Shown here: positions 5,691 to 64,000 of the stretch, one piece after another
Layout of the letters: every line of letters starts with the position of its first letter
How positions within the stretch are numbered: the stretch's first letter is position 1
Source of the DNA: Hyalangium minutum
GTDB lineage: Bacteria; Myxococcota; Myxococcia; Myxococcales; Myxococcaceae
Direction: 5' to 3'
Length of the DNA stretch: 64,000 nucleotides
Assembly (NCBI RefSeq): GCF_000737315.1
Contig: NZ_JMCB01000001.1
Location: 186,001-250,000 of the forward strand
The notes under the pieces: generated by a model
What the model was told of the DNA's origin: nothing
Database searches by the model: none
Seen by the model: only the letters and a program-made list of their open reading frames with translations
Program-made: the position numbers and the translations under genes

Positions 5691-5699
5691 GGCGGCACC

Positions 5700-6480
<781 letters not shown>

Positions 6481-6496
6481 GGGCACTCTACGTCCC

Positions 6497-7701: not shown

Positions 7702-7736
7702 GTTGGGTCCTCTGGGGGCCATCCGCATCGATGATA

Positions 7737-7873
7737 TAGCACCAGCCCCAGACCTGCCCCCACGCCCACCGCGGACAGGCCATGCCGCACCGCCAGCCAC
7801 ACCACCACCCTCCGCCTCGCCCCCAGCGCCATCCGCACCCGATCTCCCGAGCTCGCTGCGTCACCCGGTATGA
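7737..7873 (-). pseudogene. Frameshifted fragment of an FtsX/MacB-type ABC permease
   Basis: SYRVTQRAREIG / (shift) VRMALGARRRVVVWLAVRHGLSAVGVGAGLGLVL matches the 'QRTREIGIRMALGA' permease motif. Confidence 0.7.
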
Positions 7874-8060
7874 CGGCCGATGGCCCCGAAACACCCTCGG
7901 AAAGCGAGCCGGCCTCAGAGGCTCCGATTGCCTGCCTGCTCGGACGGATCCTGGCTGCCTGGAGGCTGGGGGAAGCCTCCGGCGCCGTCATCCGTTGCAG
8001 ACCGTCCCCATGGCTCCCTGGCTGTGCTAGGTAGGCCCCCTCTCTGACTTTCGAACACCT

Positions 8061-47528: not shown

Positions 47529-48245
47529 ATGGATCCCATCGGCCGCCGCCCCAGTGCCCTCCCTTCTCTTCCCACGGCTGCTCCGGCGGAGACCCGCCCT
47601 GCTGCGGCCCCCGTGAAGGCGGCCGCCACGAACGCCGTGAGCCAGCTGCAGCGCAGCAGCTTCGAGGCCCCGGTGGCGAAGGCCGCAGCGGCTCAGCCGA
47701 TGCCGGGCGCATGGCGCGGTGGGCCGGACACGCCGGTGGGCAAGGCGATCGCCGGGATGGTCGAGCGGATGCGCGCCTCGGACGCGTCGGGCATCAAGAT
47801 CAAGGGAGACACGATGGAGAGCCTGTTCACGCGGGCCATCCTGGACAACAAGCACGTGTCGAATGATCAGCTGCTGGCCATCACCCAGGTGAAGCTGGAC
47901 CAGCTGGCCACCAGCCCCGAGGATCGCGCCAAGGTGCTGCAGAAGGTGCCCAACGCCCGGGAGCTGCCGGTGCACAAGTTCACGGTGGGCATGCTCGCGG
48001 CGGCCACGGGCATTGATCCGAAGGCGCTCTCCGAGGCCTGCCCGGATCTGGGCCTGACGGGCGCGCCGGGCACCCCGCTGCTGTACGCGGCGAAGACGGA
48101 GCGGATGCAGCGCTCCACCGCGCTCCACGACTTCACGGACTACCTGCGCGGCGCGGGCGTGAAGGGCATGAACAAGGCCGTCTGGGGGGTGGAGAACCGC
48201 ATCCTCTCGGCCGCCGTGAGCGCGCTCGGCGGTGGGCGCTACTAA
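47529..48245 (+). CDS. Hypothetical protein with low-complexity N-terminus
   Basis: GC3-rich 238-aa ORF. Confidence 0.7.
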   Translation: MDPIGRRPSALPSLPTAAPAETRPAAAPVKAAATNAVSQLQRSSFEAPVAKAAAAQPMPGAWRGGPDTPVGKAIAGMVERMRASDASGIKIKGDTMESLFTRAILDNKHVSNDQLLAITQVKLDQLATSPEDRAKVLQKVPNARELPVHKFTVGMLAAATGIDPKALSEACPDLGLTGAPGTPLLYAAKTERMQRSTALHDFTDYLRGAGVKGMNKAVWGVENRILSAAVSALGGGRY

Positions 48246-48267
48246 CTAACAGCGGCTCGTGGGCGGC

Positions 48268-48298
48268 AACATCTCGGGATGGAAGATCCCGAGTGGTT
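48268..48298. terminator. Hairpin between convergent genes
   Basis: ctcgggat-ggaag-atcccgag (48273-48293) with flanking aac/gtt. Confidence 0.55.
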
Positions 48299-48360
48299 CC
48301 CACACATATTGGTCGATGGGCACCCAGGAGATGTATCTGAGGGGGTGTTTCTCGGCATGG

Positions 48361-49287
48361 CTACGGCAGTAGGTCGAGAAAGCGGCGCTCCCAGCGCTGG
48401 GTGTCCTCCTCGGACTGGCCGAGCATCCTTCCTCTGGGATCGCGGAAGAGCCACGGCTCCAGGACTTGAGCCAGCTCGCGGTAGGCTGGGAGCGTGTCGC
48501 CTCGCTCAATGTCGCCGGCCTCGGGCCATGCGCCCAGGGTGACGAGCACCTTGTCCCCTTCCATCTCCTGGACCGTGGTGCCGAGGCCGTGGAGCCGTGC
48601 GCGCAGCCCCGCAGCGCCTCCAAGCTGTCCCAGCACGGGCTGGCCCAGGAACGTGAGCCAGTGCGGACCTCTCACGCCGGTTCCGACCTCCCAGGAGAGG
48701 GACTCGGGCGAGTCGTAGACGTCGATGCCCGGATAGCGAAGCCAGTAACGGGCCACTTCGCGCCGGACTCCCACCAGCGCGTACTCGGCATTGAAGGACA
48801 GGCCCCCGTGCCCGGAGCAGAGGGGGAGAGGAGCAGCCAGTCCCATGGCCAGCTCTCGCACTCGCCCTGGGCCATGCTCCTCCAGGAACTCCGTGGGCAG
48901 CCAGAAAGTTGCCGCACACACCGGGCCCGGTCTGTGCCCCTCATGGAGCGCTTCAAGGTTCTTTTTGCCCCAGTAGTCGAAGCGATACCGGCTCTCGGTA
49001 TCGGAGCCGTCCCTCAACCGGATCATGGGAGACTGACTCTCACCTAGCTCTCGCCGAGTGATTTCCCAGCCCCGTTCGTCGAGCGGCTGCGGCTCTCCCT
49101 CATCATCCATGTACCAACCCAGCGCCTGCGGCCCAACGGCACGCAGGTACACCTCCAGAGAACGGAGGACGTTCTCGACGATCTGCAGGTGTGAATGACG
49201 CATGTAGAAGCTGATGCTCAGCCCCTCGCGGACCAACTCGAAGCCATTTTTGGCCCGGACACGTATCCGCGGGTAGCGCTCGCTCAT
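48361..49287 (-). CDS. DUF3396 / TsiV-like immunity protein
   Basis: FWLPTEFLEEHG, LPLCSGHGGL, RYPGIDV, GPHWLTFLG, LGAWPEAGD, RWERRF. Confidence 0.85.
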   Translation of the reverse strand: MSERYPRIRVRAKNGFELVREGLSISFYMRHSHLQIVENVLRSLEVYLRAVGPQALGWYMDDEGEPQPLDERGWEITRRELGESQSPMIRLRDGSDTESRYRFDYWGKKNLEALHEGHRPGPVCAATFWLPTEFLEEHGPGRVRELAMGLAAPLPLCSGHGGLSFNAEYALVGVRREVARYWLRYPGIDVYDSPESLSWEVGTGVRGPHWLTFLGQPVLGQLGGAAGLRARLHGLGTTVQEMEGDKVLVTLGAWPEAGDIERGDTLPAYRELAQVLEPWLFRDPRGRMLGQSEEDTQRWERRFLDLLP

Positions 49288-50141
49288 CGTGCGACTCCCA
49301 GGTGAGGTTGAACACGCGCAGGCTGCCCGCCCAGGGCTTTCCGGTACACCTCTCCCTGAGTTTTCCCTCCATGTGGACTTCCTGCTGGGTACTTTCTCCA
49401 GTCCAACGTCCTAGAGGTGTTCGCACAAGGGAACTTGTAGTCGTAGCCGTCCTGGACCCGGTGGGGCTGCCCTTCATGGATGACGATGTCGGGCTCGATG
49501 GTTCCGCGAAGCTCCGCGCTGCGTCCCTGTCTCAGCAACGTCTCCACCGCCTCGCGAGGGAGGTACTCGGCCTTGCCGGTCTCCGGGTCGACTCGGTAGC
49601 GGGGCTGGATGCTGAAGCCGCCCGGCTTCAGTTCCTGGAGCTTCTTCTCGGCACACTGAAGGGCGACGGTGTGTTGCTCCACACCCAATTGCATCGCTCG
49701 CGTGATGGGCTGCCCCTGGCTATCTGTACCGACGACCTCGTTGCACTCCTCGCGTGTGGGGGAACGCCCGAAGTGCTTGAGCATCACCTCGGAGCGTGCC
49801 GCATCCGCACACTCGGCAAGGGCTTCGTCAAGGCGGGCCTGCAGCCCAGCGTTCAGGGAGTGGCCGACTTGGATGACAGCAGCGCCCACCACACTGGCGG
49901 CGAGCACAGGTACGCTTGTCGCGGGTAGAGGAGGTGGCCCCGGGGGAGGATTGGGGACCACCCGGAGTCCTGGCGTGGGTGGGCAGTTGGCCGGGTTCCT
50001 GACGCAGGTATTCGAAACGGTGTCCGGGACTTGGGCATACTGGCGGGGGACGCCGTAGCTGGCCGTGCCACAGGCCGTGAAGAAGAGGACCGCGCTGAGT
50101 GCCCTCCACACCGCCCACCCGGATGAATCTCCTCGCTTCAT
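49284..50141 (-). CDS. Lipoprotein polymorphic toxin candidate with PD-(D/E)xK / VRR-NUC-like nuclease motif
   Basis: LFFTAC lipobox; EPDIVIH...YDYKFPC; ATGA overlap with the DUF3396 gene. Confidence 0.75.
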   Translation of the reverse strand: MKRGDSSGWAVWRALSAVLFFTACGTASYGVPRQYAQVPDTVSNTCVRNPANCPPTPGLRVVPNPPPGPPPLPATSVPVLAASVVGAAVIQVGHSLNAGLQARLDEALAECADAARSEVMLKHFGRSPTREECNEVVGTDSQGQPITRAMQLGVEQHTVALQCAEKKLQELKPGGFSIQPRYRVDPETGKAEYLPREAVETLLRQGRSAELRGTIEPDIVIHEGQPHRVQDGYDYKFPCANTSRTLDWRKYPAGSPHGGKTQGEVYRKALGGQPARVQPHLGVAR

Positions 50142-50376
50142 GGAGGGCTCCGTTCCCAAGGTTCTCGCGATTCTACCGAAGTGAGCACTGCTCCCCCGAT
50201 TCAACCAAGGGAGCAAGGATCCCCCTTCTGCGCGTCCACGTACTTGGGGCTGATGGCCACGTAGCCCACCTTCCCCGTCTTCGTCGGCGCCTCCGCCTGG
50301 AGACAATCATCAGGACGAGGCCCACCCCGTAGCCGAAGCTGATGACCCAACCCGCGTAGCAAATCCATGGCATGAA

Positions 50377-50451
50377 GAGCCAGATGCGGGAATTCTGCAC
50401 GTCCGGATCCGTGGGGAGCCCGGGGCCAGTCAGCGCCCGGGTTTACTCGAC
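50377..50451 (+). mobile_element. Group II intron 3' remnant (domains V and VI)
   Basis: D5 GAGCCAGATGCGGGAATTCTGCACGTCCGGATC (AGC triad, one stem mismatch); D6 hairpin cccggg..gc-cagtca-gc..cccggg ending ACTCGAC. Confidence 0.85.
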
Positions 50452-50455
50452 CAAT

Positions 50456-50488
50456 TCCAAGCTGCGGGTTCGATTCCTGCCGCCTCCA
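50456..50488 (+). repeat. tmRNA/tRNA 3'-end-like repeat, copy 1
   Basis: GCGGG-TTCGATT-CCTGC T-arm plus CGCCTCCA acceptor strand; 30/32 identical to the inverted copy at 60499-60530. Confidence 0.8.
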
Positions 50489-50491
50489 CTT

Positions 50492-51430
50492 TTACTCATT
50501 GGTGCCGCCCTCCAGCCGCTGACGGGCCGCCTCGCGGCGCTTCGCCCGGGCCTTGCCCGCAACTCCAAGCAGGGCCTTGTCCCGCGCCCACCGCTCGCGC
50601 GTGGGTGCGTCCACCTGAGGCCACCACTCCTCCAGTGACTTCACGAGCCGCTGGCACAGGTCCAGCGCTCCCCCCAGCGCCACGTGCACCGCCGGGGACG
50701 AGGGGTCCGCCAGCGCGAGCCCTCGAATCATCACCGCCACCGCGAGCACCTCGTCCTGCACCCGCTCGGGCCAGCCCGAGCGCCGCCCCACCTGCAGCAA
50801 CCAGCCCAGCAGCGCCGCGTGCACGTGGCAGTCCTCCACCGTCCGGAACGGCTTGAGGTACCTCGTATAGCCGTCCCCGGGCAGCACCTCGTCCGGAGAC
50901 ACCTTCACATCGGTCAGCTGCAGCTCCGCGTGGGGAACCTCCGGGACGAATGGCGTCTCGGGGAGCACGTTGAGGTGCACGCCCTCGCGGTGGGCGTCGA
51001 TCATCACCACCCGGAGCCGGTTCCGCCCCTGCTCATCCAGTCCCTCAGTGGCCACGACGAACAGTGTGTCCGCCGCCGTGCCCAACGTAACGAACCCTTT
51101 CGAGCCCGAGAGCCGCAGCGGCCCGCCGCCGTCGCCTCCGATGAGCCGGGTCTGGATGGCACTGGGATGGGCGCTCCCGGCCTCGGTCGCACAGAGCGCG
51201 GCACGGTGGTCCTTGGGCATCCCCGTGAAGAGCGAGCGCAACGCCGCGTGATACCCGGAGGCGAACGCGAACCCCAGCCGGTCCGCCCGGAACCCTCCCG
51301 CCAGCGCGAGGTCCACGGGCGACTGGAACCGGGAGGCCAGCTCAAGGTGCTGCCGCCACCATTCTTCCAGGGAGCCAAGCGTGCCTGGTTGGGGAGGCGT
51401 CGTGAGGAGGAATCGGAGGATTTCGTCCAC
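50492..51430 (-). CDS. Acyl-CoA dehydrogenase family protein
   Basis: ALCATE, LSGSKGFVT, PEVPHAEL, GDGY..YLKPFRTVED. Confidence 0.85.
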   Translation of the reverse strand: MDEILRFLLTTPPQPGTLGSLEEWWRQHLELASRFQSPVDLALAGGFRADRLGFAFASGYHAALRSLFTGMPKDHRAALCATEAGSAHPSAIQTRLIGGDGGGPLRLSGSKGFVTLGTAADTLFVVATEGLDEQGRNRLRVVMIDAHREGVHLNVLPETPFVPEVPHAELQLTDVKVSPDEVLPGDGYTRYLKPFRTVEDCHVHAALLGWLLQVGRRSGWPERVQDEVLAVAVMIRGLALADPSSPAVHVALGGALDLCQRLVKSLEEWWPQVDAPTRERWARDKALLGVAGKARAKRREAARQRLEGGTNE

Positions 51431-51505
51431 CTCCCCACTCTAAGTCATGGGAAATACTTCTTGTCCCCAAACCTCCCCATGGGGACTCTGTTGAGATGTA
51501 CGACG

Positions 51506-51535
51506 GGTTTTAACCATCGACCGGTCCGGGGGTTC
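51506..51535 (+). promoter_or_regulatory. Putative ECF promoter (TTTAACC-N16-GTTC) for the efflux operon
   Basis: Same spacing and boxes as the motif in front of the ECF sigma gene; 31 nt before the TolC ATG. Confidence 0.45.
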
Positions 51536-51566
51536 TCCTTCCAGACCTGCACGCTCGCCCAGCAAG

Positions 51567-52898
51567 ATGCCCACCTCCCCCGGCAAACCTCCTCGCAGCG
51601 CCCCGACCGCTCTGATGGTGGGGCTCCTCGCCCTGACCCTCACCCCGAGTCTCAGTGCCGCCCAGGAGGAGTCGTCGTGGGTGAGCATGACACTCGAAGA
51701 GGCGATGGACCGGGCGCTCAAAGCCAGCCCCCAGATCGTCCAAGCTCAGGGCACCATCCGCAACGCCGCAGCCTCCGAGCGAAGCGCCTTCGGGGCCTAC
51801 CTGCCCAGCCTGTCCGCCAACGCCAGCAGCTCGCTGTCCAGCACCGAGCGCCTCAACCCCACCACGGGCACCCCCGTCACCGGCTCCGCCGATTCCTACA
51901 GTGCGGGCCTCTCGGCCTCGTGGGACGTGTTCACCGGGTTCCGCCGGAAAAATGAGCGCATGCGCGCCCAGGCCGAGTCCCAGTCCGCCGAGGCCCAGCT
52001 CGTGGGCCAGCGCTTCACCGTGGAGCTCTCCGTCGCGCGCTCCTTCTTCGAGGCCCTGCGCGCCGAGGAGCTCATGACCGTGGCCAAGGCCCGCATCGAG
52101 CGCGCTCGCGAGGGCGTCGAGGCCGCCGAGCGCCGCTTGGCCGTGGGCTCGGCCACGCGCTCGGATGTGCTCCGCTCCCAGCTTGAGCTCAACACCGCCC
52201 AGGAGTCCCTGCTCCAGTTGGAGAACCAGCGCCTGACGTCAGGCCTCACCCTGGGGCGGCTCGTCGGCACCGATGGCCCCGTGGACCCGGCTCCCTCCGG
52301 TCCTCTGGAGCCCACGCCGATCCAGTCCTCGCGCGAGGACATCATCTCCAGCCTCGTCGCCCAGGCGCCTTCGGTGAAGTCCGCGGAGGCCGCCGTGCTC
52401 TCGGCCGATGCAGGTATCGGCACGGCGCGCTCGCAGTACTACCCCACCGTCCGCCTCTCCGCCGGCTATGACTGGTTCAACCAGGACTTCGGCTTCGCGG
52501 GAGGCCGGACGAGCTGGTCCGTCCGGCTCGGGGTCTCCTATCCCATCTTCGACGGCTTCCAGCGCGAGGGGGGGATGATCCGCGCGACCACTGCGGCCGA
52601 AGTCAGCCAGGCCCAGCTCCTGGACACCCGCCGCGCCGTCCGCTCCGAGGCCGAGCGGGTGATGAGCCAACTCGCTCTCTCGGAGAAGCGCGTCACCATG
52701 GCCCGGCAGGCCGTGGAGGTCGCCCAGGAGGATCTGCGCGTCCAACAGGAGCGCTATCGCCTGGGTGCCACCACCATCCTCGAGCTGCTCACCTCCCAGG
52801 CCGCCCTCGTCGAGGCCCAGAACAACCTCGTGAGCCTGCGCTTCGACTACCTGCTGTCCCGCTCCGAGCTGGAGTCCGTTCTCGGGAGGAAGCTGTGA
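51567..52898 (+). CDS. TolC family outer membrane efflux protein
   Basis: Signal peptide, [24 protein letters not shown]. Confidence 0.92.
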
Positions 52899-53608
52899 AC
52901 GCCGGCGAGCGCTCGGTCCTGGACGTGGTCATCCGCGTCGAGAGCCTGACGAAGACGTACAAGATGGGCTCGGAGGAAGTGCACGCCCTGCGCGGAGTCA
53001 ACCTGGAGATCCGCCGCAACGAGTACGTCGCCGTCATGGGCCCCTCCGGCTCCGGCAAGTCCACTTTCATGAACCTCATTGGCTGCCTGGATATCCCGAG
53101 CGGCGGCCAGTACTGGCTCAACGGCCAGCCCGTGGCGGGACTGAGCGAGGAGGCGCTGGCCCGGATACGCAACCGCGAGATCGGCTTCGTCTTCCAGAGC
53201 TTCAACCTGCTGCCCCGCGCCTCCGCGCTGGACAATGTGGCGCTGCCGCTCGTCTACGCGGGCGTGAGGAAGAGCATCCGCCGCGAGCGGGCCGCCGTGC
53301 TGCTCGACAAGGTGGGCCTCGGGGCGCGCAAGGACCACCGCCCCAACGAGATGTCCGGCGGCCAGCGCCAGCGCGTGGCCATTGCCCGGGCCCTCGTCAC
53401 CCAGCCCGCACTGCTGCTGGCGGACGAGCCCACCGGAGCGCTCGACAGCAAGACCGGCGAGGAGATCATGGCGCTCTTCGGTGAACTCCATGCCCAGGGA
53501 CAGACCTTGATGCTCGTTACCCATGAATCCGACATTGCCGAGCACGCCAAGCGCGTCCTCTTTCTCAAGGACGGCGTGATCGAGCGGGATGACCGGAAGA
53601 AAGACTGA
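52895..53608 (+). CDS. ABC transporter ATP-binding protein (MacB/LolD type)
   Basis: [44 protein letters not shown]. Confidence 0.95.
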
Positions 53609-53623
53609 ACGGGAGAGGCGCTC

Positions 53624-55117
53624 GTGAACTGGAAGAAGGTGGTCCTCATCCTCGGAGTGCTGGCCCTCGTGGGAGCGGGCGTGTACTTCGTGCGCGGCCA
53701 GGCCGCGGCGAAGACGCCTCAGCGCGAGCTGCCCACCGCCGAGGCCAAGCGCATGGACATGGAGATCGTCGCCGAGGCCTCCGGCCTGCTGGAGCCCATC
53801 CGCGTCGTGGAGGTGAAGTCGAAGGCCTCCGGTGAGGTGCTCCGCGTGCTCGTCGAGACTGGCAACGCGGTGAAGCAGGGAGACCTGCTGACGGAGATCG
53901 ATCCCCGCGACGTGCAGAACGCGCTCATCCAGGCCGAGGCGGACCTCGAGTCCGCCCAGGTCCGCATGAAGACCGTCGAGGCCCAGCGCCAGCGCATGGA
54001 GGCCCTGCGGGCCACCGGCGTCGTCACGCAGCAGGAGCTGGAGACCGCCGTGGATGCCGCCGCCACGGCCCGCGCCGCCGTCGTCCGCGCCGATACGAAC
54101 CTGCAGCTGGCCCGAGAGCGGCGCAAGGACGTGACGATCCGTGCGCCGATCGACGGCACCATCCTGGAGCGCACCATCGAGCCTGGGCAGATCATCGCCT
54201 CGGCCACCACCAACGTGTCCGGCGGCACCACGCTGTTCAAGATGGCCGACATGTCCGAGATGCAGGTCCGCACGAAGGTGGACGAGACCGACATCGGGAA
54301 GATCCGCCCCGGCCTGGAGGCGCGCGTCTCGCTGGAGGCCTACCCCAGCCGCACCTTCACCGGCGAGGTCGTCAAGATCGAGCCTCAGGCCGTGGTCGAG
54401 CAGAACGTGACGCTCTTCCCCGTGCTCATCCGCCTGAAGAACCCGGAGGGGTTGCTCAAGCCCGGGATGAACGCGGAGGTGGGTGTCCAGATCGCCAGCC
54501 GCCAGGACGTCGTCACGGTCCCCAACACGGCGGTGGTGAGCCCTCGCGAGGCAGCCACCGCGGCGTCGGCGCTCGGCCTGGACGAGGCCACGGTGCGCGC
54601 GACGCTGCGCCCATCGGGAGCTGCTCCCTCGACGGGTCCAGCCCCTGAGACGCCCGCGGCCCCGTCTCCGGAGTGCGCGGAGCTGTTCGAGCGCCTCAAG
54701 ACGGATGCGGGCCCCCCCAGCCTGTCCGACGCGGATCGCGAGAAGCTCCAGGCGTGCAGGCCCGAGGGCATGGCCGAGGGCGGTGGCCGGGGCGGACGGT
54801 TCCGCGGCGGCCAGGGCCAGCAGCGCGGAAACAACGCGGACCGGCGTCCCGGGGTGGTCTTCGTTCAGCAGCAGGACGGCAGCCCCCAGCCCCGGCGCGT
54901 CATGCTGGGCCTGAGCGACTGGGAAAACACGGAGGTCCTCAACGGCCTGGAGGCGGGCGAGAAGGTGCTCCTGGTCGCCGTGGCCCAGCTCCAGCAACAG
55001 CAGCAGCAGAGCATGGATCGGATGCGGCAGCGGGCCGGCGGCGTCATCCCCGGCGCGGGCGGCGGAGCTCGTGGCGGTGGTGGCGGTGGTGGCGGCGGTG
55101 GCGGCACCCGGAGGTAA
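53624..55117 (+). CDS. Periplasmic adaptor (MacA/HlyD type) with Gly-rich tail
   Basis: N-terminal TM, VKSKASG, IRAPIDG, VDETDIG, LKPGMNA. Confidence 0.92.
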   Translation: MNWKKVVLILGVLALVGAGVYFVRGQAAAKTPQRELPTAEAKRMDMEIVAEASGLLEPIRVVEVKSKASGEVLRVLVETGNAVKQGDLLTEIDPRDVQNALIQAEADLESAQVRMKTVEAQRQRMEALRATGVVTQQELETAVDAAATARAAVVRADTNLQLARERRKDVTIRAPIDGTILERTIEPGQIIASATTNVSGGTTLFKMADMSEMQVRTKVDETDIGKIRPGLEARVSLEAYPSRTFTGEVVKIEPQAVVEQNVTLFPVLIRLKNPEGLLKPGMNAEVGVQIASRQDVVTVPNTAVVSPREAATAASALGLDEATVRATLRPSGAAPSTGPAPETPAAPSPECAELFERLKTDAGPPSLSDADREKLQACRPEGMAEGGGRGGRFRGGQGQQRGNNADRRPGVVFVQQQDGSPQPRRVMLGLSDWENTEVLNGLEAGEKVLLVAVAQLQQQQQQSMDRMRQRAGGVIPGAGGGARGGGGGGGGGGGTRR

Positions 55118-55124
55118 CGCGGCC

Positions 55125-56336
55125 ATGATCATCTTCGAGATCCTCTGGGTGGCGCTGGACGCGATCGTCGCCAACAAGCTGCGCTCGCTGCTCACCATGC
55201 TGGGCGTCGTCATCGGCATCGCGGCGGTCATCACCATGGTGGCCCTGGGCGAGGGAGCCCAGCGCTCGGTGGAGGCCCGGCTGAAGACGCTGGGCGCCAA
55301 CGTGCTCACCGTCCGCCCCGGGCAAAGCTTCGCGGGTGGACTGGGCCGAGGCCAGGCCGCGCTCACCGCCGAGGATGCGGAGGCGCTCCGCGAGGCGCCT
55401 CAGTACATCCAGGCCGTCTCGCCCGAACTGGAGGGCCGGGTGCAGATCGAGAACGGCGCGAGCAACGCCAACATGTCCATCGTGGGCGTGTGGCCCACCT
55501 ACTTCAGCGTCAACAACTATCAGCTGTCAGACGGGCGCCTCTTCACCGAGGCGGAAGAGCGAGGCCGCCGCCGCATCGCCGTCCTGGGTGCCCTGGTGGG
55601 CTCGCAGCTCGGCGGCGTCTCGAGCGAGTCACTGGTGGGGAAGACGATCCGGATCGGCGGCGTGCCCTTCGAGGTCATCGGGGTGCTCACGGAGAAGGGC
55701 TCCCAGGGATTCTCCAATCCGGACGAGAGCCTCTACATCCCCCTGGCGACCGCGCAGTTCCGCGTCATGGGCAGTGACCGCGTGCGCTCCATCGCCGTGC
55801 AGGCCACGAGCGAGGACACCATGGATGACGCCATGGTGGAGATCGATCAGGTCCTCCGGCGCCAGCACCGGCTGCGGCCTGGGCAAGATGCGGACTTCAA
55901 CATCCGCGATCAGGCCTCGCTGCTCAGCACCGTGCAGGAGACCACGCAGACGTTCACCTTGCTGCTGGCGGGCATCGCGGCGATCTCCCTGCTGGTGGGA
56001 GGCATCGGCATCATGAACATCATGCTGGTGTCGGTGACGGAGCGCACCCGGGAGATCGGCCTGCGCAAGGCGCTGGGCGCGCGGCCCAACGACATCATGC
56101 TGCAGTTCCTCATCGAGTCGCTCGTGCTGTGCCTCGTCGGCGGCGGCCTGGGGCTGCTGCTGGGTCTGGGCGGCTCGTATGCGCTTCAGCAGCTCGCGGG
56201 GTGGCAGACGGCCGTGGCGCCCGAGTCGGTGGTGCTGGCCTTCGTGTTCTCGGGCGGCGTGGGCGTGTTCTTCGGCATCTGGCCTGCCCGGCGTGCGGCG
56301 AGCCTCACGCCGATCGAGTCTCTCCGGTACGAGTAG
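55125..56336 (+). CDS. MacB-type ABC permease
   Basis: RSLLTMLGVVIG, GGIGIMNIML, ERTREIG, ALGA, PIESLRYE. Confidence 0.95.
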   Translation: MIIFEILWVALDAIVANKLRSLLTMLGVVIGIAAVITMVALGEGAQRSVEARLKTLGANVLTVRPGQSFAGGLGRGQAALTAEDAEALREAPQYIQAVSPELEGRVQIENGASNANMSIVGVWPTYFSVNNYQLSDGRLFTEAEERGRRRIAVLGALVGSQLGGVSSESLVGKTIRIGGVPFEVIGVLTEKGSQGFSNPDESLYIPLATAQFRVMGSDRVRSIAVQATSEDTMDDAMVEIDQVLRRQHRLRPGQDADFNIRDQASLLSTVQETTQTFTLLLAGIAAISLLVGGIGIMNIMLVSVTERTREIGLRKALGARPNDIMLQFLIESLVLCLVGGGLGLLLGLGGSYALQQLAGWQTAVAPESVVLAFVFSGGVGVFFGIWPARRAASLTPIESLRYE

Positions 56337-56351
56337 CCCGCGGCCCCGCGC

Positions 56352-56990
56352 CTACGCCTGCTTGCGCGTCTTCGAGCGGGCGCCGCCCCGCGCCGTCTGC
56401 TTGCGCTGGGAGCCCTTGGCGCGGGTCTTCTTCTGCGTGCTCGCGCCCTTCTTGGCGGCCTTCTTCGCTGCCTTCCGGGCCCGCTGGGGCGGCTTGGGGG
56501 GCGCCAGGATGGTGCCCCGGCAGTCCTTCGCGCCACAGCGGCACACGTAGAGCGCCTCGGATTCCTCGTCCATGCCCTCGGCCCGCTCGTAGGCGTAGTC
56601 GTAGACGAGCTCCGTACCGGGCGAGATGTCCTTCAGGGCGTAGATGAAGATCTTGTCGCCCTCGATGAGCGCCTGGCAGTTGGGATCGCAACTGTGGTTG
56701 ATGAAGCGCGCCTCGTTGCCGTCCACCGCGGCGTCGATCACCGTGTCGTCGTCCAGGGTGAACAGGAAGGTGTGGTGGCGGCCCATGGCCTCGTCGTCGT
56801 AGCGCTTGTCCGCCTCGTCCTGAGTGATGCGCTCACCGGTGTACTCGATGATGCGCGCGCCCTTGCGGATGCGGCGCGTGGCGAAGGCGCCCCGCCCTTG
56901 GATGGGGGACTCGCGCAGCTCGAACGACAGCGGGCGACCGGTACTGGAGGGCGGGGAGGCAGAGGACTTCTTCGAGGTGGAGTCTGTCAT
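56352..56990 (-). CDS. SET-domain protein-lysine methyltransferase with post-SET Cys motif and basic tail
   Basis: SPIQGRGAFA, RFINHSCDPN, ELVYDY, CRCGAKDCRG. Confidence 0.92.
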   Translation of the reverse strand: MTDSTSKKSSASPPSSTGRPLSFELRESPIQGRGAFATRRIRKGARIIEYTGERITQDEADKRYDDEAMGRHHTFLFTLDDDTVIDAAVDGNEARFINHSCDPNCQALIEGDKIFIYALKDISPGTELVYDYAYERAEGMDEESEALYVCRCGAKDCRGTILAPPKPPQRARKAAKKAAKKGASTQKKTRAKGSQRKQTARGGARSKTRKQA

Positions 56991-57040
56991 CGATTGGTAT
57001 ACCTTGCCGCACTCGGACCTTCGATGAAAGGCGCTCGACG

Positions 57041-57412
57041 ATGCGGCTGTGGATTGTCCTGGGCGCGGTGAACGCGTTCCTCTCGGTGGCGGCAGGGGCT
57101 TTCGGCGCGCACGGGCTGAAGGCACGGCTCTCCGCGGATCTCCTCGCCATCTTCGAGACCGGGGCCCGCTACCACATGTACCACGCGCTGGGGCTCATCG
57201 CGGTGGGGCTCGTGGCGCAGGCGCGGCCTGTAGGGCTGCTCACCGGTGCGGGTGTGGCCATGTTGGCGGGGATCGTCCTCTTCTCCGGCAGCCTGTACGC
57301 ACTGGCGCTCACGGGCGTTCGCGCCCTGGGAGCCATTACTCCCCTGGGAGGCCTGGGCTTCCTGGCCGGCTGGGCCCTGCTGGCGCTGGCTGTCTGGCGC
57401 GCCGGGCCCTGA
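57041..57412 (+). CDS. DUF423 (YgdD/TMEM256) membrane protein
   Basis: GAFGAHGL, YHMYHALG, LFSGSLY, GAITPLGG. Confidence 0.92.
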   Translation: MRLWIVLGAVNAFLSVAAGAFGAHGLKARLSADLLAIFETGARYHMYHALGLIAVGLVAQARPVGLLTGAGVAMLAGIVLFSGSLYALALTGVRALGAITPLGGLGFLAGWALLALAVWRAGP

Positions 57413-57415
57413 GCC

Positions 57416-57724
57416 TCACTTCACCTTCGGAGGCATGGGGTACATCAGATCGACCTCGGCGTGGTCGAACAGGCCTATCGCCTCGCGCTGGATGATGAGG
57501 TACCAGCGCTGGTGGTCTGCCTCCGCCCAGAGCTTCTGGTACTCCTCGACCTTCTTGGCGCGCGGGGGCCCGGCGAGCGTTCGCAGCTCGGGTTCGAGCT
57601 TCACCATCTGGCCAATCAGGATCTCCAGCTTGTCCCCGACGCGCCGGAGCGCGGAAGCCTTCTCCTGGCGAATCTGGACTTCAATCGCGAGCGGTGTGCC
57701 GATCGATGAGGATGACGAGGGCAT
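57416..57724 (-). CDS. Hypothetical coiled-coil protein
   Basis: WYLIIQREAIG motif; GC3-rich ORF. Confidence 0.65.
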   Translation of the reverse strand: MPSSSSSIGTPLAIEVQIRQEKASALRRVGDKLEILIGQMVKLEPELRTLAGPPRAKKVEEYQKLWAEADHQRWYLIIQREAIGLFDHAEVDLMYPMPPKVK

Positions 57725-57733
57725 GGCGGAAAG

Positions 57734-59092
57734 CTAACGGCCCCCCGTGGGGCTGTCACCAGAGGGGGCCTCCGGAGCGGGGGCTGCCTCCTGAATTCCA
57801 TCGGTTGCGCTTATTGGCTGGGCCAGCCGAGGGAGCGAGGGCGAGGCGGGCCCGCCCGGCAGGAACGAGGCCACGGTGACGTCCTTCTGCCGCTTGCGGA
57901 GCTCCTTGTAATCCTCGATGGCCCGCTCCAGGCCCACATCCTTCTTCTCCCGCTCGGAGAGGAACCACTTGTGCTCCAGCACCTGGCAGTAGAGCTCGGA
58001 CAGCTCGGTCGCTCCTCGGACAGGCATGAGCTTCTGAACGGTCGGGTTGAAGCGCTCCTCCAACCAACGGAAGGCTGCGGTGCTCAGCGGGGTGCTGCGG
58101 TTGAGCTCGCGCGCCAGCGTGGCCTTGAGCTCCTGGATCTCGTTGAGCAGCAGCGTGGCCTGCTTCTCCTCGGCGACGATGCCCAGCAGGTTGTGGAGCT
58201 GGTGCCGGTGGTAGCTGCGGTCCGTGACGATGGTCCGCATGCGCAGGTGATCGCTCTCGCCGCTGGCCACCAGATCCACCTCCCCCACCGAGAACCCCAG
58301 GTCGTTCAGCGCGCGGATCCGCTCGTGGATGCGGTAGCTCTCGTTCGGCGCAATGGGGATCTCCTTGTTGATCTCCTCCCAGAGCCGCTCGTAGCGCTTG
58401 CGGATGGTGGGGCCGGTCTCGAAAACCTCCAGCGACGGGGGCAGCTCCACCACCGCCGCCAGATCCGCCAAACCGCCGGCGACGTTCTCCTCCATGATGT
58501 CCAGGTCGTGCAGGCGCTTGCCGTCCGACAGGTGCTCGTGCAGCTCGGAGGTCTCCGCGTCCACCGCGTAGGCCTGCAGCTCGCCCGCGTCCCGGCGGAA
58601 CAGCGTGTTGGAGAGGGAGCAGTCGCCCCAGTAGAAGCCGCCCAGGTGCAGGCGCACGAGCAGGCTGGCCATGGCGTCCAGCAGCCGCTCCCGGTAACGC
58701 TCCAAGCCCTGGTTCATGAAGAGCGTGCGGTACGGGAGCGAGCCCTCCAGGAAGCGGGTGATGAGCACGCTGCTCTCCTCCCCCTCTGAGAGCGTGGCGC
58801 TCGTGCGCGCCTTCACCAGTCCGACGGCCTCCACCGCCGGCAGCTCCCGCTCCTCGAGGCCTCGCAGCACCTCGTACTCGCGCTGGCCCACGCGCGGCGG
58901 CAGCTCCTTGAGGGCGTAGATGACCTTGCCGTAGCTGACGAAGAGCACCTCGTGGCGGGACAGACCACGCGGCACCTGGACCAGCCGGTTGCACTTCCCC
59001 TCCCACTCCGCGAGCGACAGGCTCCAGGGCAGGTCGAGGAAGTCCGGGTGCCCCTGGCGAATCTGGATGGCGGTGAGGCCGATGGGTGGCAT
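57734..59092 (-). CDS. DUF4032-containing LPS-kinase-like protein
   Basis: [43 protein letters not shown]. Confidence 0.8.
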
Positions 59093-59153
59093 GGCGTCGC
59101 TTCCCGAGAACAGTGCGTGGCGCTGCACCCCAAGCATATTCTGCCCCGCGACC

Positions 59154-60470
59154 ATGCACGCCCTCCTCCCGCTGCTTGCCCTGGCGCTCTGTCTCGCGCC
59201 CGTCACCACGCCCGCTCAGCCCTCCTCCCCTGCTGCTCCGGCTCCCGCGCCTGCCCAGCCCGCCACCCTGCTGCGCCCGGCCCGCGTCTTCGACGGGGTC
59301 TCGGCCCAGCCGCGTGAGGGTTGGGTGGTGCTCGTCAGGGGAGATCGGATCGCCGCGGTAGCGCCCGCTGCCCAGGTGAGGCCCCCCGAGGGCGCCGAGG
59401 TCATCGATCTGCCCGACACCACGCTCCTGCCCGGTCTCATCGAGGGCCACTCGCACCTGCTGCTCCACCCGTACAACGAAGCGCCCTGGAACGATCAGGT
59501 GCTCAAGGAGTCACTCGCGCTGCGCGTCGCGCGGGCCACCCAGCATGCCCGCGCTACCCTCATGGCGGGCTTCACCACGATTCGGGACCTGGGCACCGAG
59601 GGCGCTGGGGACGCGGACGTGGGACTCAAGCAGGCCATCCATCAGGGCATCATCCCCGGCCCCCGGATGAAGGTCACCACGCGGGCCCTCGTGGCCACCG
59701 GCAGCTATGGGCCCAAGGGACTCGCCGTGGAGTGGGAGGTGCCACAAGGCGCCGAGGAGGCGGATGGCGTGGACGCGCTCATCCGCGCTGTGCGGGGGCA
59801 GATCGGCCGCGGGGCGGACTGGATCAAGGTTTACGGGGACTACCGCTGGGGCCCCAAGGGTGAGGCGCGGCCCACGTACTCGGAGGCGGAGCTGCGGCTC
59901 ATCGTCGAGACGGCGCGCGACAGCGGCCGCCCGGTGGTGGTGCATGCATCCACGGCCGAGGGCATCCGCCGCGCGGTGATGGCGGGGGTGGAGACCATCG
60001 AGCACGGCGACGAGGCGACGCCCGAGGTGCTCAAGCTCATGGCCCAGCGAGGGGTAATGCTTTGCCCCACCCTCTCCGCCCAGGAGGCGAACCTGGGGTA
60101 CGGCGGGTGGAAGAAGGGCGTCAGCCCGGAGCCGGAGTCCGTGCGCAAGAAGCGCGAGGCCTTTCGCGCCGCGCTGGCCTCGGGCGTGACGATCTGCAAC
60201 GGCAGTGACTCGGGCGTCTTCGCGCACGGCGACAACGCGCGAGAGCTGGAGCTGATGGTGGAGTACGGCATGGCTCCCACGCAGGCGCTCCGGGCGGCCA
60301 CCTCCGTCAACGCGCGCATGTTGCACATGGAAGACCAGCTCGGGCAGGTAAAGGAGGGGCTGCTGGCGGACCTCGTCGCGGTGCGAGGCGATCCCACGCG
60401 CGACATTTCTACCCTGCGCCAGGTGCGGCTCGTGATGAAGGGCGGGAAGGTGTACCGCCGCGAGCCCTGA
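59154..60470 (+). CDS. Secreted metal-dependent amidohydrolase (Xaa-Pro dipeptidase-like)
   Basis: [41 protein letters not shown]. Confidence 0.9.
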
Positions 60471-60498
60471 GCTTTAACATTGATGGGATTCTCGGGAG

Positions 60499-60530
60499 GG
60501 AGGCGGCGGGAATCGAACCCGCCGCTTGGA
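60499..60530 (-). repeat. tmRNA/tRNA 3'-end-like repeat, copy 2
   Basis: Minus strand TCCAAGCGGCGGGTTCGATTCCCGCCGCCTCC. Confidence 0.8.
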
Positions 60531-60573
60531 GCTTCTGGCGAGCGCGCCTCAACTCGGTCAAGCGCGGGCCCCT

Positions 60574-60690
60574 TACCTTAGAAGAGTGCGGAGTGCTGGC
60601 CCACGGCTTCGCGCGGGTGCGGTGTGGAAGTTGTAAGGACGAACTTCTGTCGCCTTCTCATGCAAGGGGCGAAGAGTGTGCCTTCCTTGA
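60574..60690 (+). mobile_element. IS91-family transposase zinc-binding-domain remnant (frameshifted)
   Basis: ECGVLAHGFARVRCGSCKDELL / (-1 shift) VAFSCKGRRVC then stop; matches the IS91-type 'CGxLxxGFARVxCxxC..VAFSCKxRxxC' motif. Confidence 0.85.
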
Positions 60691-60743
60691 GGAAGCCCGC
60701 AAGGCCCACGCCCGCGACGAGCAGTCACAGGGTCACCAGCCCC

Positions 60744-63700
60744 TCACGGAGACCTGAGTCGGCGCCGGCGAAGCGCCAGGGCCAGTGTCAACAAAGCCCA
60801 GGTGACAGGGGACGCGGAGGCGCTGGAGCAACCCCAGCCGTAATGGCTCTGCTGGACCGCGAAGACATGATCGACGCGCTGGCTCTCATTGCCAGCCTTA
60901 TCTCTGGCGATGGTGGAGACGACATGTTTCCCGACTGCCAGATCACTCGATGGGGTGAACATCCAGACCTCCGACTCATCGACGTCAACCTCGTCCACCT
61001 TCGTCCCATTCAGCCACACCTCCACCGTGCTCTCTCGCTCGGCGGTTCCACGAATGGTAGGCCTTCTGCTGGTGGCGAATTCCCCAGGCGCAGTCACTTG
61101 GGGCTCCGCTGGCGCCAGAGAATCAATGGTGAAGTCGAACGGCTTCGAAAGAGAGCTGATATTCTTCGCCAGATCCGCAGCGGTGGCAGTGATCTGGTGG
61201 GAGCCCTCATTCAGGGCGGGGGACGGGAAGGACCAACCGCCCGACGCACTCGCAACGGCTATCCCAGCTACCTCCCCATCCACCAGCACTGTCACCGTGC
61301 TCTCGGCCTCCGCTCTCCCCGTAAAGTTTAGACTCAAGTCTTTGATGGAACCCGCGGTTGCAGTGATCTCTGGGGCTGCTGGCGCCAGCGTGTCGACCCC
61401 AAAGCTAATGGGAGCGGAGACAGGGCTGACGTTGCCCGCTGCATCCATGGAGGTGGCCGTGACCTGGTGGGGCCCGTCGAGCAGCGCCGTGGTCGGGAAG
61501 TCCCAGCCGCCTGACGCTCTCACGATGGCTGTCCCGACCACGACCCCATCTAGAGACACCGTCACCGTGCTTTCGGCCTCTGCCGTTCCGGAAATGATGG
61601 GTCCCTGAGTATTGATGAATTCCCCGAGCGTGCTCAACACAGGTGCCGCTGGCTTCGACACGTCCACCTTGAAGCTGCGGGTCGGGGAGGCAGAACCCAT
61701 ATTGCCCGCCTCATCTGCGGCGGTAGCTGTGACTTGATGGGAGCCCTCTACCAGTTCCGTGGTTGGTATGGCGGCCCAGTCTCCCGCACTGTTCGCCATA
61801 GTCTTTCCCACAATGATCCCATCCAGCGAAACCGTGACGATGCTACTTGGCTCAGCCGTCCCGACGATGATTGGCTTCCGGGCATTGACGAGGTCCCCAG
61901 GTACAGTCACCGCTGGCGCACCTGGCTCCACGGTGTCAACCACGAAGGTACGGGCTTCGGACACAGGGCTGACATTGCCTGCCGCATCCATGGCGGTGGC
62001 ATGGACCTGCTGGACGCCATCGGTCAGCCCTGTGGCAGGGGTGAAACTCCAAGCTCCTCTGACATTGGCTGTGGCTGTGCCTGCCTCCGTGCCATCCAGG
62101 AATACCGTCACCGTGCTGTCGGCCTCCGCCGTCCCTCCAAGAATGGGCGTCGGCGTGTTGACGAATGCCGGAGGCGCGCTCATCAAGGGAGCACCTGGCG
62201 GCCTGGTGTCCACCGTGAACCTGTTGGTGTTGGAGCCGAAGCTGGTGTTGCCCGCCGCATCCCGTGCCGTGGCGCTCACCGGGTGTGCGCCATCAGCCAA
62301 CGGCGTGGTCGGCGTGAAGTTCCAGTTGCCGCTGGCATTGGCCGTGGTGGTGCCCACCGGCGTGCCGTCCACGATGACCGTCACCGTGCTGCCTGGCTCG
62401 GCGGTGCCCGTGTAGTCCGGGGTGTTGTCGTTGGTGCGCGAGCCATTGGCCGGTGTCACCACCACCGGAGCCGCCGGAGGCGTGGCGTCCACGATGAACG
62501 TGTTGGTGTTGGAGCCGGGGCTGGTGTTGCCCGCCGCATCCCGTGCCGTGGCGCTCACCGGGTGTGCGCCATCGGCCAGCGATATGGTCGGCGTGAAGTT
62601 CCAGTTGCCGCTGGCATTGGCCGTGGTGGTGCCCACCAGCGTGCCGTCCACGATGACCGTCACCGTGCTGCCCGGCTCGGCAGCGGTGCCCGTGTAGTCC
62701 GGGGTGTTGTCGTTGGTGAGCGAGCCGTTGGCCGGCGTCACCACCACCGGAGCCGCCGGAGGCGTGGTGTCCACGATGAACATGTTGGTGTTGCTCGACA
62801 CGCTCTGCACACCCTCGGTCGTGTTGACAGCCACGGCGCTCACCGTGTGCGAGTCGGGCGCCAGGGGCGTCGTGGGGGTGAAGCTCCAGTTGCCAGCGGC
62901 ATCCGGCGTCGCCGAGCCCACTGTCACCCCGTCCACGATGACGGACACCGTGGTCCCCGTGGGGAACGGCTGGGCGAGCGTGCCCATGTAGGTGAGCGTC
63001 GTGTTGTTGGTCGAGGAGCCGTTGGCCGGCGTGACTACCACCGGCGCGGGCAGCACGGGGAAGCCACCGGTCAGCGTGGCCGTGGCGCCTGCGGTTCCGG
63101 GCTGCGCGCCGTAAAAGGCGCCCAGCGGAGACGAGGAGTTCGCCTGCACGCCGGCGTTCCCGGTGTTGACGGCAAAGGTCGGCAGGGCGCAGGTGCCACT
63201 CCCCTTCTGGAAGATGATACGGCCACCGCCGCCCGCGCCACCCGGACCGACGTCGAAGCCCGAGTTGGAGCTGCCGCCGTTGCCTCCAATGGCCGTGATG
63301 TTTCCGCATGTCGCAGCTGCGGCGACGCGCAGGTAGATGGTGCCGCCGCCGCCACCGCCGCTCGAACCATCCTGACCGCTGGCGTTGCCGCCCGGATCGC
63401 CGTTGGCCGACATCGACCCGGCACCCGAGATCGCTCCGACGCGGGCGAAGATGATGCCACCGCCCCGGCCACCGGCTGCGGTGCCACCCGAGGAGTGACC
63501 CGCACCGCCGCCCCCGCCCATGAGCAGGTGGTTGAACTTGCTGGAGGACGTATAGGTCAGCCCCAAGCCTCCAGTTCCTCCCACGGCCCGGCTGCCATCA
63601 TTGCTGTTACCGCCCAGGCCGCCGCCACCGACGTGAGCGCCACCACCGCCGCCCGAGCTGTCACACACGCCACCGCCACCACCGGTGGTCACATGCCCGC

Positions 63701-64000
63701 GCCCCGTAACCGAGGAGCCGTACCGGGTGAAGGCGATGCCCTCACCCTTCTGCGCTCCCTTCGGAGGAGCCTCATCCAGCCCCGTGCAGCCCACGTCGCC
63801 GCTGGCGTCCTCCACCGGCTGCCCACTGCGGAAGCCACGGCCCGCGGCGTTGAGAGCGGGAATGCCCCCGCTGGTCATCAAGGTCCCCGAGACCAGGAAG
63901 GCCAGCACGCCGCCGGTGCTACCATCCCACATAGAGGGGGCAAGGCTGCGGGCAGCCGGGATGGTGAGGTTGAGGTACTCGGGCACCCGGACGACCTGGG
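60744..64000 (-). CDS. Large surface protein (AgmC-like) with Gly-rich region, bacterial Ig-like repeats and MYXO-CTERM sorting signal; starts beyond the window
   Basis: Repeated 'P..P.V..P..TP.I.GTAE..STVTV.LDG..G...A...G.W..TP..L..G.H.V.ATA.D.AGN.S' units; GWGC + TM + RRRR C-terminus. Confidence 0.85.
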   Translation of the reverse strand, partial: QVVRVPEYLNLTIPAARSLAPSMWDGSTGGVLAFLVSGTLMTSGGIPALNAAGRGFRSGQPVEDASGDVGCTGLDEAPPKGAQKGEGIAFTRYGSSVTGRGHVTTGGGGGVCDSSGGGGGAHVGGGGLGGNSNDGSRAVGGTGGLGLTYTSSSKFNHLLMGGGGGAGHSSGGTAAGGRGGGIIFARVGAISGAGSMSANGDPGGNASGQDGSSGGGGGGTIYLRVAAAATCGNITAIGGNGGSSNSGFDVGPGGAGGGGRIIFQKGSGTCALPTFAVNTGNAGVQANSSSPLGAFYGAQPGTAGATATLTGGFPVLPAPVVVTPANGSSTNNTTLTYMGTLAQPFPTGTTVSVIVDGVTVGSATPDAAGNWSFTPTTPLAPDSHTVSAVAVNTTEGVQSVSSNTNMFIVDTTPPAAPVVVTPANGSLTNDNTPDYTGTAAEPGSTVTVIVDGTLVGTTTANASGNWNFTPTISLADGAHPVSATARDAAGNTSPGSNTNTFIVDATPPAAPVVVTPANGSRTNDNTPDYTGTAEPGSTVTVIVDGTPVGTTTANASGNWNFTPTTPLADGAHPVSATARDAAGNTSFGSNTNRFTVDTRPPGAPLMSAPPAFVNTPTPILGGTAEADSTVTVFLDGTEAGTATANVRGAWSFTPATGLTDGVQQVHATAMDAAGNVSPVSEARTFVVDTVEPGAPAVTVPGDLVNARKPIIVGTAEPSSIVTVSLDGIIVGKTMANSAGDWAAIPTTELVEGSHQVTATAADEAGNMGSASPTRSFKVDVSKPAAPVLSTLGEFINTQGPIISGTAEAESTVTVSLDGVVVGTAIVRASGGWDFPTTALLDGPHQVTATSMDAAGNVSPVSAPISFGVDTLAPAAPEITATAGSIKDLSLNFTGRAEAESTVTVLVDGEVAGIAVASASGGWSFPSPALNEGSHQITATAADLAKNISSLSKPFDFTIDSLAPAEPQVTAPGEFATSRRPTIRGTAERESTVEVWLNGTKVDEVDVDESEVWMFTPSSDLAVGKHVVSTIARDKAGNESQRVDHVFAVQQSHYGWGCSSASASPVTWALLTLALALRRRRLRSP
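62205..62790 (-). repeat. Two near-identical ~280-bp Ig-like repeat units
   Basis: gtgtagtccgggg recurs at 62410 and 62692 (282-nt period); protein units differ at few residues. Confidence 0.85.

Follow-up and report, generated by a model that had tools for sequence, protein, structure and literature searches.

Two 32-nucleotide (nt) blocks that resemble the 3' end of transfer-messenger RNA (tmRNA) lie in inverted orientation on either side of a 10-kb gene block in Hyalangium minutum DSM 14724 (Archangiaceae, Myxococcota; GCA_000737315.1, JMCB01000001.1). The 64-kb stretch of this genome that was analysed is called the window here, and the two blocks are called copy A and copy B; an exact protein match sets position 1 of the window at position 186001 of the record. 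Both are probably relics of the left, or terIS, end of a myxobacterial rolling-circle insertion sequence (IS) of the IS91 family, an end whose hairpin apparently derives from tmRNA. That this element carries the block is well supported by comparison of the window with related loci, in which the block recurs beside an IS91-family transposase gene.

Two inverted blocks with a tmRNA-like core

Copy A occupies positions 50456..50487 of the forward strand (TCCAAGCTGCGGGTTCGATTCCTGCCGCCTCC) and is made up of a non-tmRNA extension, TCCAAGCT, followed by a T-arm and the 3' strand of an acceptor stem. Copy B occupies 60499..60530 on the reverse strand; its reverse complement reads TCCAAGCGGCGGGTTCGATTCCCGCCGCCTCC and matches the consensus of the family exactly. 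In alignment the two copies agree at 30 of 32 positions, with the consensus TCCAAGC[T/G]GCGGGTTCGATTCC[T/C]GCCGCCTCC, and identity ends sharply on either side of the block. An inverted, near-identical pair at 50456 (+) and 60499-60530 (-) had been reported in a sequence-only reading of this DNA, and it is present at those positions. The 24-nt core of the block, with up to three mismatches allowed, matches twice in the window and not at all in 100 dinucleotide-preserving shuffles; likewise, the T-loop motif GGTTCGAWTCC occurs just twice in the 64 kb, in copies A and B. Because both copies carry the 7-nt TCCAAGC extension, they belong to one copy lineage and are not independent fragments of the tmRNA gene, ssrA.

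Exact matches to the core itself, GCGGGTTCGATTCCCGCCGCCTCC, number at least 120 in IMG/VR. ARAGORN, run on 40 of these loci, called only tmRNA genes over the 24-mer and never a tRNA. The T-stem is directly preceded by GGAC, the 3' strand of helix 2a, in the true tmRNAs from IMG/VR, in contrast to AGCT or AGCG in the window copies, so only the T-arm and acceptor strand of the latter are tmRNA-like. The likeness to a tmRNA 3' end claimed for these pieces therefore holds for the core, which corresponds to the T-arm and acceptor strand common in bacterial tmRNAs. Judged by these matches, it is a faithful copy of a generic tmRNA T-arm and acceptor 3' strand, with nothing of a tmRNA upstream.

Neither block is part of an RNA gene, as the earlier reading had also stated. 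By ARAGORN, the 64-kb window is free of tRNA and tmRNA genes, and no Rfam model matches the window at its gathering score; in E-value mode, the T-arm and acceptor strand alone align to tmRNA models, at 13-20 bits compared with gathering scores of 47-84. The 5' half that was said to be missing is indeed missing, in that the 500 nt upstream of each copy contain no acceptor partner GG[GA]GGCG. A tmRNA or tRNA gene, including a permuted tmRNA, is ruled out by the negative ARAGORN and Rfam results. A local 5' acceptor strand that would make a minihelix at the window copies was also sought; none was found, and GGAGGC-like bases upstream are not conserved among the relatives.

As single-stranded DNA (ssDNA), copy B can form an 8-bp stem, GCGGCGGG/CCCGCCGC, directly followed by CTCC, and folds at -11.8 kcal/mol (z = -2.3). 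Two substitutions weaken the hairpin of copy A, which folds at -3.5 kcal/mol (z = -0.3), no better than shuffled sequence. These values bear on the suggestion that the blocks are functional tRNA-like RNA elements, acting as signals for 3' processing or CCA addition, or as terminators, on the transcripts of the flanking genes. Convergent genes end 4-28 nt before the T-arm-like hairpins and CTTTT follows copy A, as might be expected of such elements, yet the hairpins have no 5' acceptor strand, their partial Rfam matches are sub-threshold, a consensus terminator scan calls neither block, and copy A folds at the level of shuffled sequence. Moreover, the copies are absent at the orthologous sites of three relatives (considered below), so no function is conserved there. 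The proposed role as processing signals is accordingly very improbable, and a terminator function of the blocks was set aside on the result of the terminator scan.

Linkage to an IS91-family transposase

The extended block, CCAAGCNGCGGGTTCGATTCCNGCCGCCTCC, was searched for in one genome per species across 185,579 species and gave five matches, all in Myxococcota; a scan of metagenomes gave four contigs, two of which duplicate genome matches. None of these matches falls in a tRNA or tmRNA gene. Only the CCAAGCN variant was used in the scans, so the size of the family is underestimated: other variants are carried by three of the related loci, which are designated here by L numbers (L132, L133, and L139).

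A tnpA gene of the IS91 family that reads outward accompanies the block at copy B and at L122, L123/L129, L125/L127, L128, and L133, with its 5' region 10-110 nt from the block. The encoded transposase has the domains PF14319 (Zn_Tnp_IS91) and PF04986 (Y2_Tnp). Full-length genes with both domains adjoin the block at L132 and L133, and at L133 the gene is intact (466 amino acids) and stands behind the same spacer and block as elsewhere. L125 has a near-full gene with one in-frame stop; its homologues with both domains occur in large numbers in Archangiaceae and Myxococcaceae. At L122 and L128 the composite recurs but has lost parts of its spacer by deletion, and L126 and L130 retain the block and part of the spacer. 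Along this spacer, similarity between the 5' flank of copy B and L123, L125, L126, L130, and L133 continues for a further 45-110 nt; beyond it, an IS91-family transposase directed away from the block has its N-terminus encoded on the opposite strand.

In the window, the spacer conserved with these five loci survives as a remnant at 60531..60583 (+), followed at 60557..60712 (+) by a transposase pseudogene remnant that covers the zinc-binding N-terminal region, about codons 44-95. The remnant has an internal deletion of about 250 bp and is frameshifted and truncated; it translates as GFARVRCGSCKDELL / VAFSCKGR. It was detected by tblastn with five transposase queries (P0001, P0003, P0005, P0010, and P0014; E = 5e-9 to 1e-8) and is the sole such match in the window, and its DNA is 86-89% identical to L125, L131, L132, and L133. 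Copy B thus keeps about 190 bp of the element, about 150 bp of it transposase pseudogene. An IS91 remnant adjoining copy A was looked for with tblastn and sensitive blastn, and that candidate was dropped when both were negative. At such solo sites the family sequence retained is short, 33 nt in copy A and 37 nt in L124.

Comparison of L131 with L132 gives a canonical IS of about 1.69 kb. Both loci have the right end ...TATCCCGCCTATACGC, a variant of which occurs in L133; it is absent from the truncated window copies. This right end resembles the oriIS motif of ISCR elements, and the putative oriIS can also be written ...CCTATACGC. The sequences that flank oriIS (..GTCC.. in L131, ..CGTC.. in L132, and ..TTCC.. 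in L133) are suggestive only. In the sub-lineage of L125 and L133, the canonical left end of about 50 nt, with half of a subterminal hairpin, is replaced by the spacer and block. Among IS copies with a transposase at least about 88% identical, seven of eight have the block on the terIS side, L131 being the exception. Wherever it accompanies tnpA, the block is on this side, and its tRNA-sense strand is the strand antisense to tnpA. More distant IS copies (L134 and L135, with 70-73% transposase identity) are without the block. In L131, the IS91-family copy (5095-8418) is split by an IS21-like element with an rve integrase and an AAA ATPase, i.e., one IS is nested in another.

The composite of block, spacer, and truncated IS is found at no fewer than seven unrelated sites with differing outer flanks. 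The outer flanks fall into at least eight classes, beside unrelated genes that include those for a methyl-accepting chemotaxis protein, a sigma-54 activator, a TIR/PEGA protein, and a beta-lactamase-family protein. Past the hairpin, about 20 nt are common to L125, L126, and L139 before the sequences diverge; the shared outer flank is about 22 nt in L122 and L124, and 27 nt in copy B and a lone copy at L132 (L132-2). A shared stretch followed by divergence places the hairpin in a subterminal position.

The block is turned so that its outer (acceptor) end points towards a convergent host gene at nearly all of the loci (L122-L139 and copies A and B), with 4-230 nt between it and the 3' end of that gene. 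Such an arrangement suggests insertion into gene-terminal intergenic DNA, or tolerance of insertions only there.

Two IS copies from different loci and different assemblies have a more regular form of the block. L132 (3798-3829, -) and L139 (3845-3875, -) each carry a perfect 12- to 13-bp palindrome with a canonical T-loop, GGAGGCGGCGGG-TTCGATT-CCCGCCGCCTC(C), separated by the same 24 nt from a canonical IS91 left end, outside which it lies. As ssDNA these palindromes fold at -18.6 kcal/mol (L132) and -20.0 kcal/mol (L139), each with z of about -5. Across the intact relatives, the hairpin of the block has 8-13 bp and CTCC comes next. Each of the two loci also has a second, lone copy 3 kb away (L132-2 and L139-2). 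In the variant GGAGGCGGCGGG-TTCGATT-CCCGCCGCCTCC, the canonical T-loop and a 12-bp coaxial geometry are those of the acceptor-T-arm minihelix of tRNA; the hairpin differs from that minihelix in that it sits in DNA at an IS end, antisense to the sole nearby gene, and the window copies differ further in being without the 5' arm. The 5' arm of the perfect 12-bp version reads GGAGGCG rather than the GGGGGCG of real tmRNA, so this version is not a simple deletion derivative of tmRNA; as a speculation, snap-back copying of the 3' arm would yield it.

L132 also has, at 6721-6826 (-), a 106-nt sequence that resembles a mini-tmRNA, GGGGGaaCGAT...GCGGGTTCGATTCCCGCCGCCTCCA, in which the mRNA and pseudoknot body is gone. 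It aligns to Rfam RF00023 at 24 bits (E = 5.5e-8 in 385 nt), below gathering, and its 27-nt 3' flank matches window positions 60472-60498. This may conceivably be a degenerate ssrA copy resembling the progenitor of the block.

Lone tmRNA 3' fragments have a more familiar source, and the sequence-only reading had named attachment (att) scars as one possibility. In their classical form these would be attR-type 3' fragments left by tyrosine-integrase islands in ssrA and scattered later. No integration target is more enriched than tmRNA genes, and integration is usually marked by displaced 3' fragments that begin in the T-stem region (PMC4383910). Many lone 24-mers stand at prophage ends in IMG/VR, and both window copies, like the attR fragments described for Islander and TIGER, are lone tmRNA 3' fragments from the T-stem onward, at the edge of lineage- or strain-specific DNA, with the 3' end facing conserved genes. 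An Islander-type scar, however, is recognised by an intact tRNA or tmRNA gene (tDNA) together with an integrase and a directly oriented cognate fragment (PMC4383910). No ssrA or other intact cognate tDNA is found in the 64-kb window or in 18 related loci, and the window copies are inverted, not direct. Nor is there an integrase in the window or at any of 14 distinct block-bearing loci: Pfam searches found none among open reading frames (ORFs) supported by third-position GC content (GC3) between 41.6 and 64 kb or among the block-flanking ORFs of L122-L130, and the gene tables of L131-L139 hold no tyrosine integrase. An integrase beside the blocks was on this ground rejected. The outer flanks, in at least eight classes by unrelated genes, are not one attB flank or an ssrA downstream region, and by the non-tmRNA extension and spacer that they share, the copies are bound to one IS-borne lineage, which has a transposase of another mechanistic class. 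IMG/VR scans for three of the outer-flank classes and for the perfect hairpin gave no matches, and no flank class was tied to a genuine ssrA. Blastn against 50,697 phage records returned generic T-arm matches only and no Myxococcus phage, and a myxophage attP was set aside as the source. That the blocks are scars of mobile DNA, as had been proposed, is supported; their origin from an integrase is improbable, at perhaps one chance in eight.

A probable tmRNA-derived hairpin at a proposed terIS

The two ends of IS91-family elements are functionally distinct, with oriIS downstream and terIS upstream of tnpA (PMC13181058). At terIS, a subterminal palindrome lies beside the cleavage tetranucleotide. 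Termination in this family is leaky, which leads to one-ended transposition that mobilises adjacent DNA (PMC13181058). The element described here shares with IS91, IS801, IS1294, and the related ISCR elements the Zn_Tnp_IS91 and Y2_Tnp domains, asymmetric ends, and a palindrome followed by CTCC upstream of tnpA, at the place of terIS; its variable outer ends fit leaky termination. It differs in that the palindrome on this side matches a tmRNA T-arm and acceptor strand at 24 of 24 positions, and in that one sub-lineage has exchanged the canonical left end of about 50 nt for the spacer and block. No description of such an arrangement was found in the literature searched for IS91 together with tmRNA and for IS91 in myxobacteria.

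From the palindrome and CTCC on the terIS side, as in the IS91 family, we infer that the tmRNA-derived hairpin serves, or served, as a functional termination signal of terIS. Identity at 24 of 24 positions to a pan-bacterial tmRNA 3' end points to capture of the hairpin from ssrA rather than to convergence. In the sequence of events that this would imply, the IS or an ancestor came to adjoin the 3' end of ssrA or a displaced copy of it; read-through (one-ended) transposition then ended at the natural palindrome with its CTCC, and the new end was propagated. Two such elements would have entered the H. minutum lineage independently, coming to flank the ancestral 10-kb block with their bodies outward. 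Erosion after insertion would have left copy B with spacer and pseudogene, and copy A, where we infer a former IS body, with the block alone and a mutated hairpin.

A comparable hairpin is known from Helitrons, eukaryotic rolling-circle elements of the HUH/Y2 type, which have a GC-rich subterminal hairpin about 10-25 nt from the terminating 3' end and capture flanking DNA by read-through. The likeness lies in the subterminal GC-rich palindrome at the terminating end; Helitrons differ in belonging to another kingdom and in their transposase, which is a Rep-helicase. We know of no Helitron hairpin derived from tRNA or tmRNA.

Several observations weigh against the assignment of copies A and B to a terIS. 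L131, a close IS copy from Archangium violaceum, is without the block, so the block is not obligatory. The lone copies (copy A, L124, L132-2, and L139-2) have no adjoining IS remnant and are linked to the IS by sequence family alone; L132-2 and L139-2 lack even the CCAAGC extension. The outer ends vary, being flush with CCTCC(A) at some loci and 19-27 nt farther out at others, although this may reflect leaky termination. A terminus has been mapped by an empty site only at the copy B remnant, and the comparators are mostly metagenome-assembled genomes or metagenome contigs.

The block that L131 lacks, the lone blocks without IS remnants (including the second copies 3 kb away at L132 and L139), and the variable outer flanks also speak for a different arrangement, in which the block is not part of the IS and is instead a pre-existing dispersed hairpin, for example an old att scar or a repeat family, that is a favoured landing place for this IS91 clade. 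The target tetranucleotide of the IS91 family abuts oriIS, not terIS (PMC13181058), and yet the block is always on the terIS side. The recurrence of block, spacer, and truncated IS as one composite at the unrelated sites described above argues that block and IS were mobilised together, and 56 kb of IS-free Hyalangium DNA contains no block. A landing site of this kind is unlikely, at around one chance in six, and copies A and B are better read as remnants of the element's own terIS end.

A broader proposal can be put forward tentatively, at slightly under even odds. An IS91-family clade of Archangiaceae and Myxococcaceae would have co-opted the tmRNA T-arm and acceptor strand, which some copies complete to a perfect 12-bp minihelix, as its terIS, and tDNA 3' ends would be natural mimics of terIS: with a GC-rich palindrome, GTTC in the loop, and CTCC after it, they could stop read-through rolling-circle transposition and be captured by it.

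Insertion edges, neighbouring genes and meaning

Three relatives, reached through orthologues of a DUF4032 kinase, were compared with the window: L136, a close one with 90% nucleotide identity, L137 (H. gracile), and L138 (H. rubrum). The gene order of the 10-kb block is identical in all three, and all three are without the repeats; none of them holds a T-loop motif, and the motif is absent from 56 kb of IS-free Hyalangium DNA. In the window, the gene block lies between the copies at 50492..60470 and runs from an acyl-CoA_dh_M-like gene to an amidohydrolase gene; with its high GC3, its Pfam assignments, and the gene order kept in the relatives, it is not itself mobile. Copies A and B stand at the edges of DNA gained in the H. 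minutum lineage; the block that they bracket is ancestral.

The edge at copy B can be placed to within a few nucleotides. Synteny with the window stops at 60471 in L136 and at 60473 in L137, 1-3 nt past the stop codon of the amidohydrolase gene. The 27-nt outer flank of copy B (60472..60498, -) lies within the inserted unit, 60472 being the end of the lineage-specific DNA. L132 6698-6748 matches window 60472-60522 at 90%, and similarity between the copy B unit and L132-2 ends at 60472, within 1 nt of the break in synteny with L136 and L137; this coincidence maps one terminus of the inserted unit.

The inverted orientation of the copies, their identity at 30 of 32 positions, and the gene block that they bracket had suggested that the 10 kb might invert, whether as a programmed switch or by homologous recombination. 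The longest run of exact identity between the copies is 14 bp, and the others are 7 and 9 bp. Efficient RecA recombination needs roughly 25 bp; runs so far below this length weigh against inversion. No invertase or recombinase gene is found nearby by Pfam, and the orientation of the block relative to the DUF8299 gene is unchanged in H. rubrum, which lacks the repeats. Inversion of the bracketed block is therefore highly unlikely.

On the other side of the gene block, H. rubrum has 27 nt between the DUF8299 and acyl-CoA_dh_M genes, which in the window are parted by 48246-50491. This interval includes a lineage-specific insertion of 2.2 kb (48246..50455), with copy A at its right edge, that contains toxin and immunity candidates, small ORFs, and an intron-like stretch. 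A gene of the TsiV family ("Type VI immunity for VRR-NUC") lies at 48361-49287 (-; Pfam E = 5e-57); upstream of it, and overlapping it, an ORF at 49284-50141 (-) encodes a lipoprotein and candidate toxin with the lipobox MKRGDSS...LFFTACG in its translation. The lipoprotein has no Pfam or NCBIfam match, and NCBIfam named neither gene. Together, 48361-50141 form a candidate toxin-immunity pair, whose arrangement resembles that of the SitA/SitI-type polymorphic lipoprotein toxin cassettes of myxobacteria.

The stretch at 50375..50451 (+), which ends 4 nt before copy A, resembles domains V and VI of group II introns (RF00029, 28.4 bits); the score is below the gathering value of 40, with E-values of 6e-4 (261 nt searched) and 5.6e-3 (2.3 kb searched). 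Intron domains D1-D4 have no match in 48200-50500, no reverse-transcriptase remnant was found, and the stretch may be debris of another mobile element or a chance match. At the left edge of the 2.2-kb insertion, a 12-nt sequence, TCTCGGGATGGA, lies in a small hairpin at 48272-48283 (+) and is identical to the outer flank and first block bases of L132-2. The match was equalled in 11 of 500 shuffles and may be due to chance; a second truncated end at this edge is not relied on.

Beyond the IS91 remnant, a gene at 60744-63986 (-) that continues past the end of the window encodes a giant surface protein with immunoglobulin-like repeats (eight Big_13, seven Big_6, and a Ca_tandemer repeat). Its N-terminal region scores near the model for the gliding-motility protein AgmC (260 bits; cut-off 275). 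The gene occupies the slot held in the relatives by a gene for 229-234 amino acids next to the amidohydrolase gene, and about 30 bp separate its 3' end from the IS91 remnant.

In the window, copies A and B would be dead scars left at the points where mobile DNA came in next to a conserved gene block, and annotation of them as RNA genes, att sites, or an inversion switch should be avoided. As eroded ends of an IS91-family element they have a fairly ordinary explanation; what is unusual is a hairpin on the termination side that copies the 3' end of tmRNA. Lone tmRNA and tRNA 3' fragments are routinely taken for att scars of integrases and serve island finders as endpoints, so an IS91-type element with such a fragment at its end would give false island boundaries in myxobacterial genomes. 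If the role at terIS is real, this would be a rolling-circle transposon that has recruited a hairpin of a host RNA gene as its stop signal; and if tDNA 3' ends have been co-opted in this way, lone tDNA 3' fragments would have a second, integrase-independent means of spreading through genomes.

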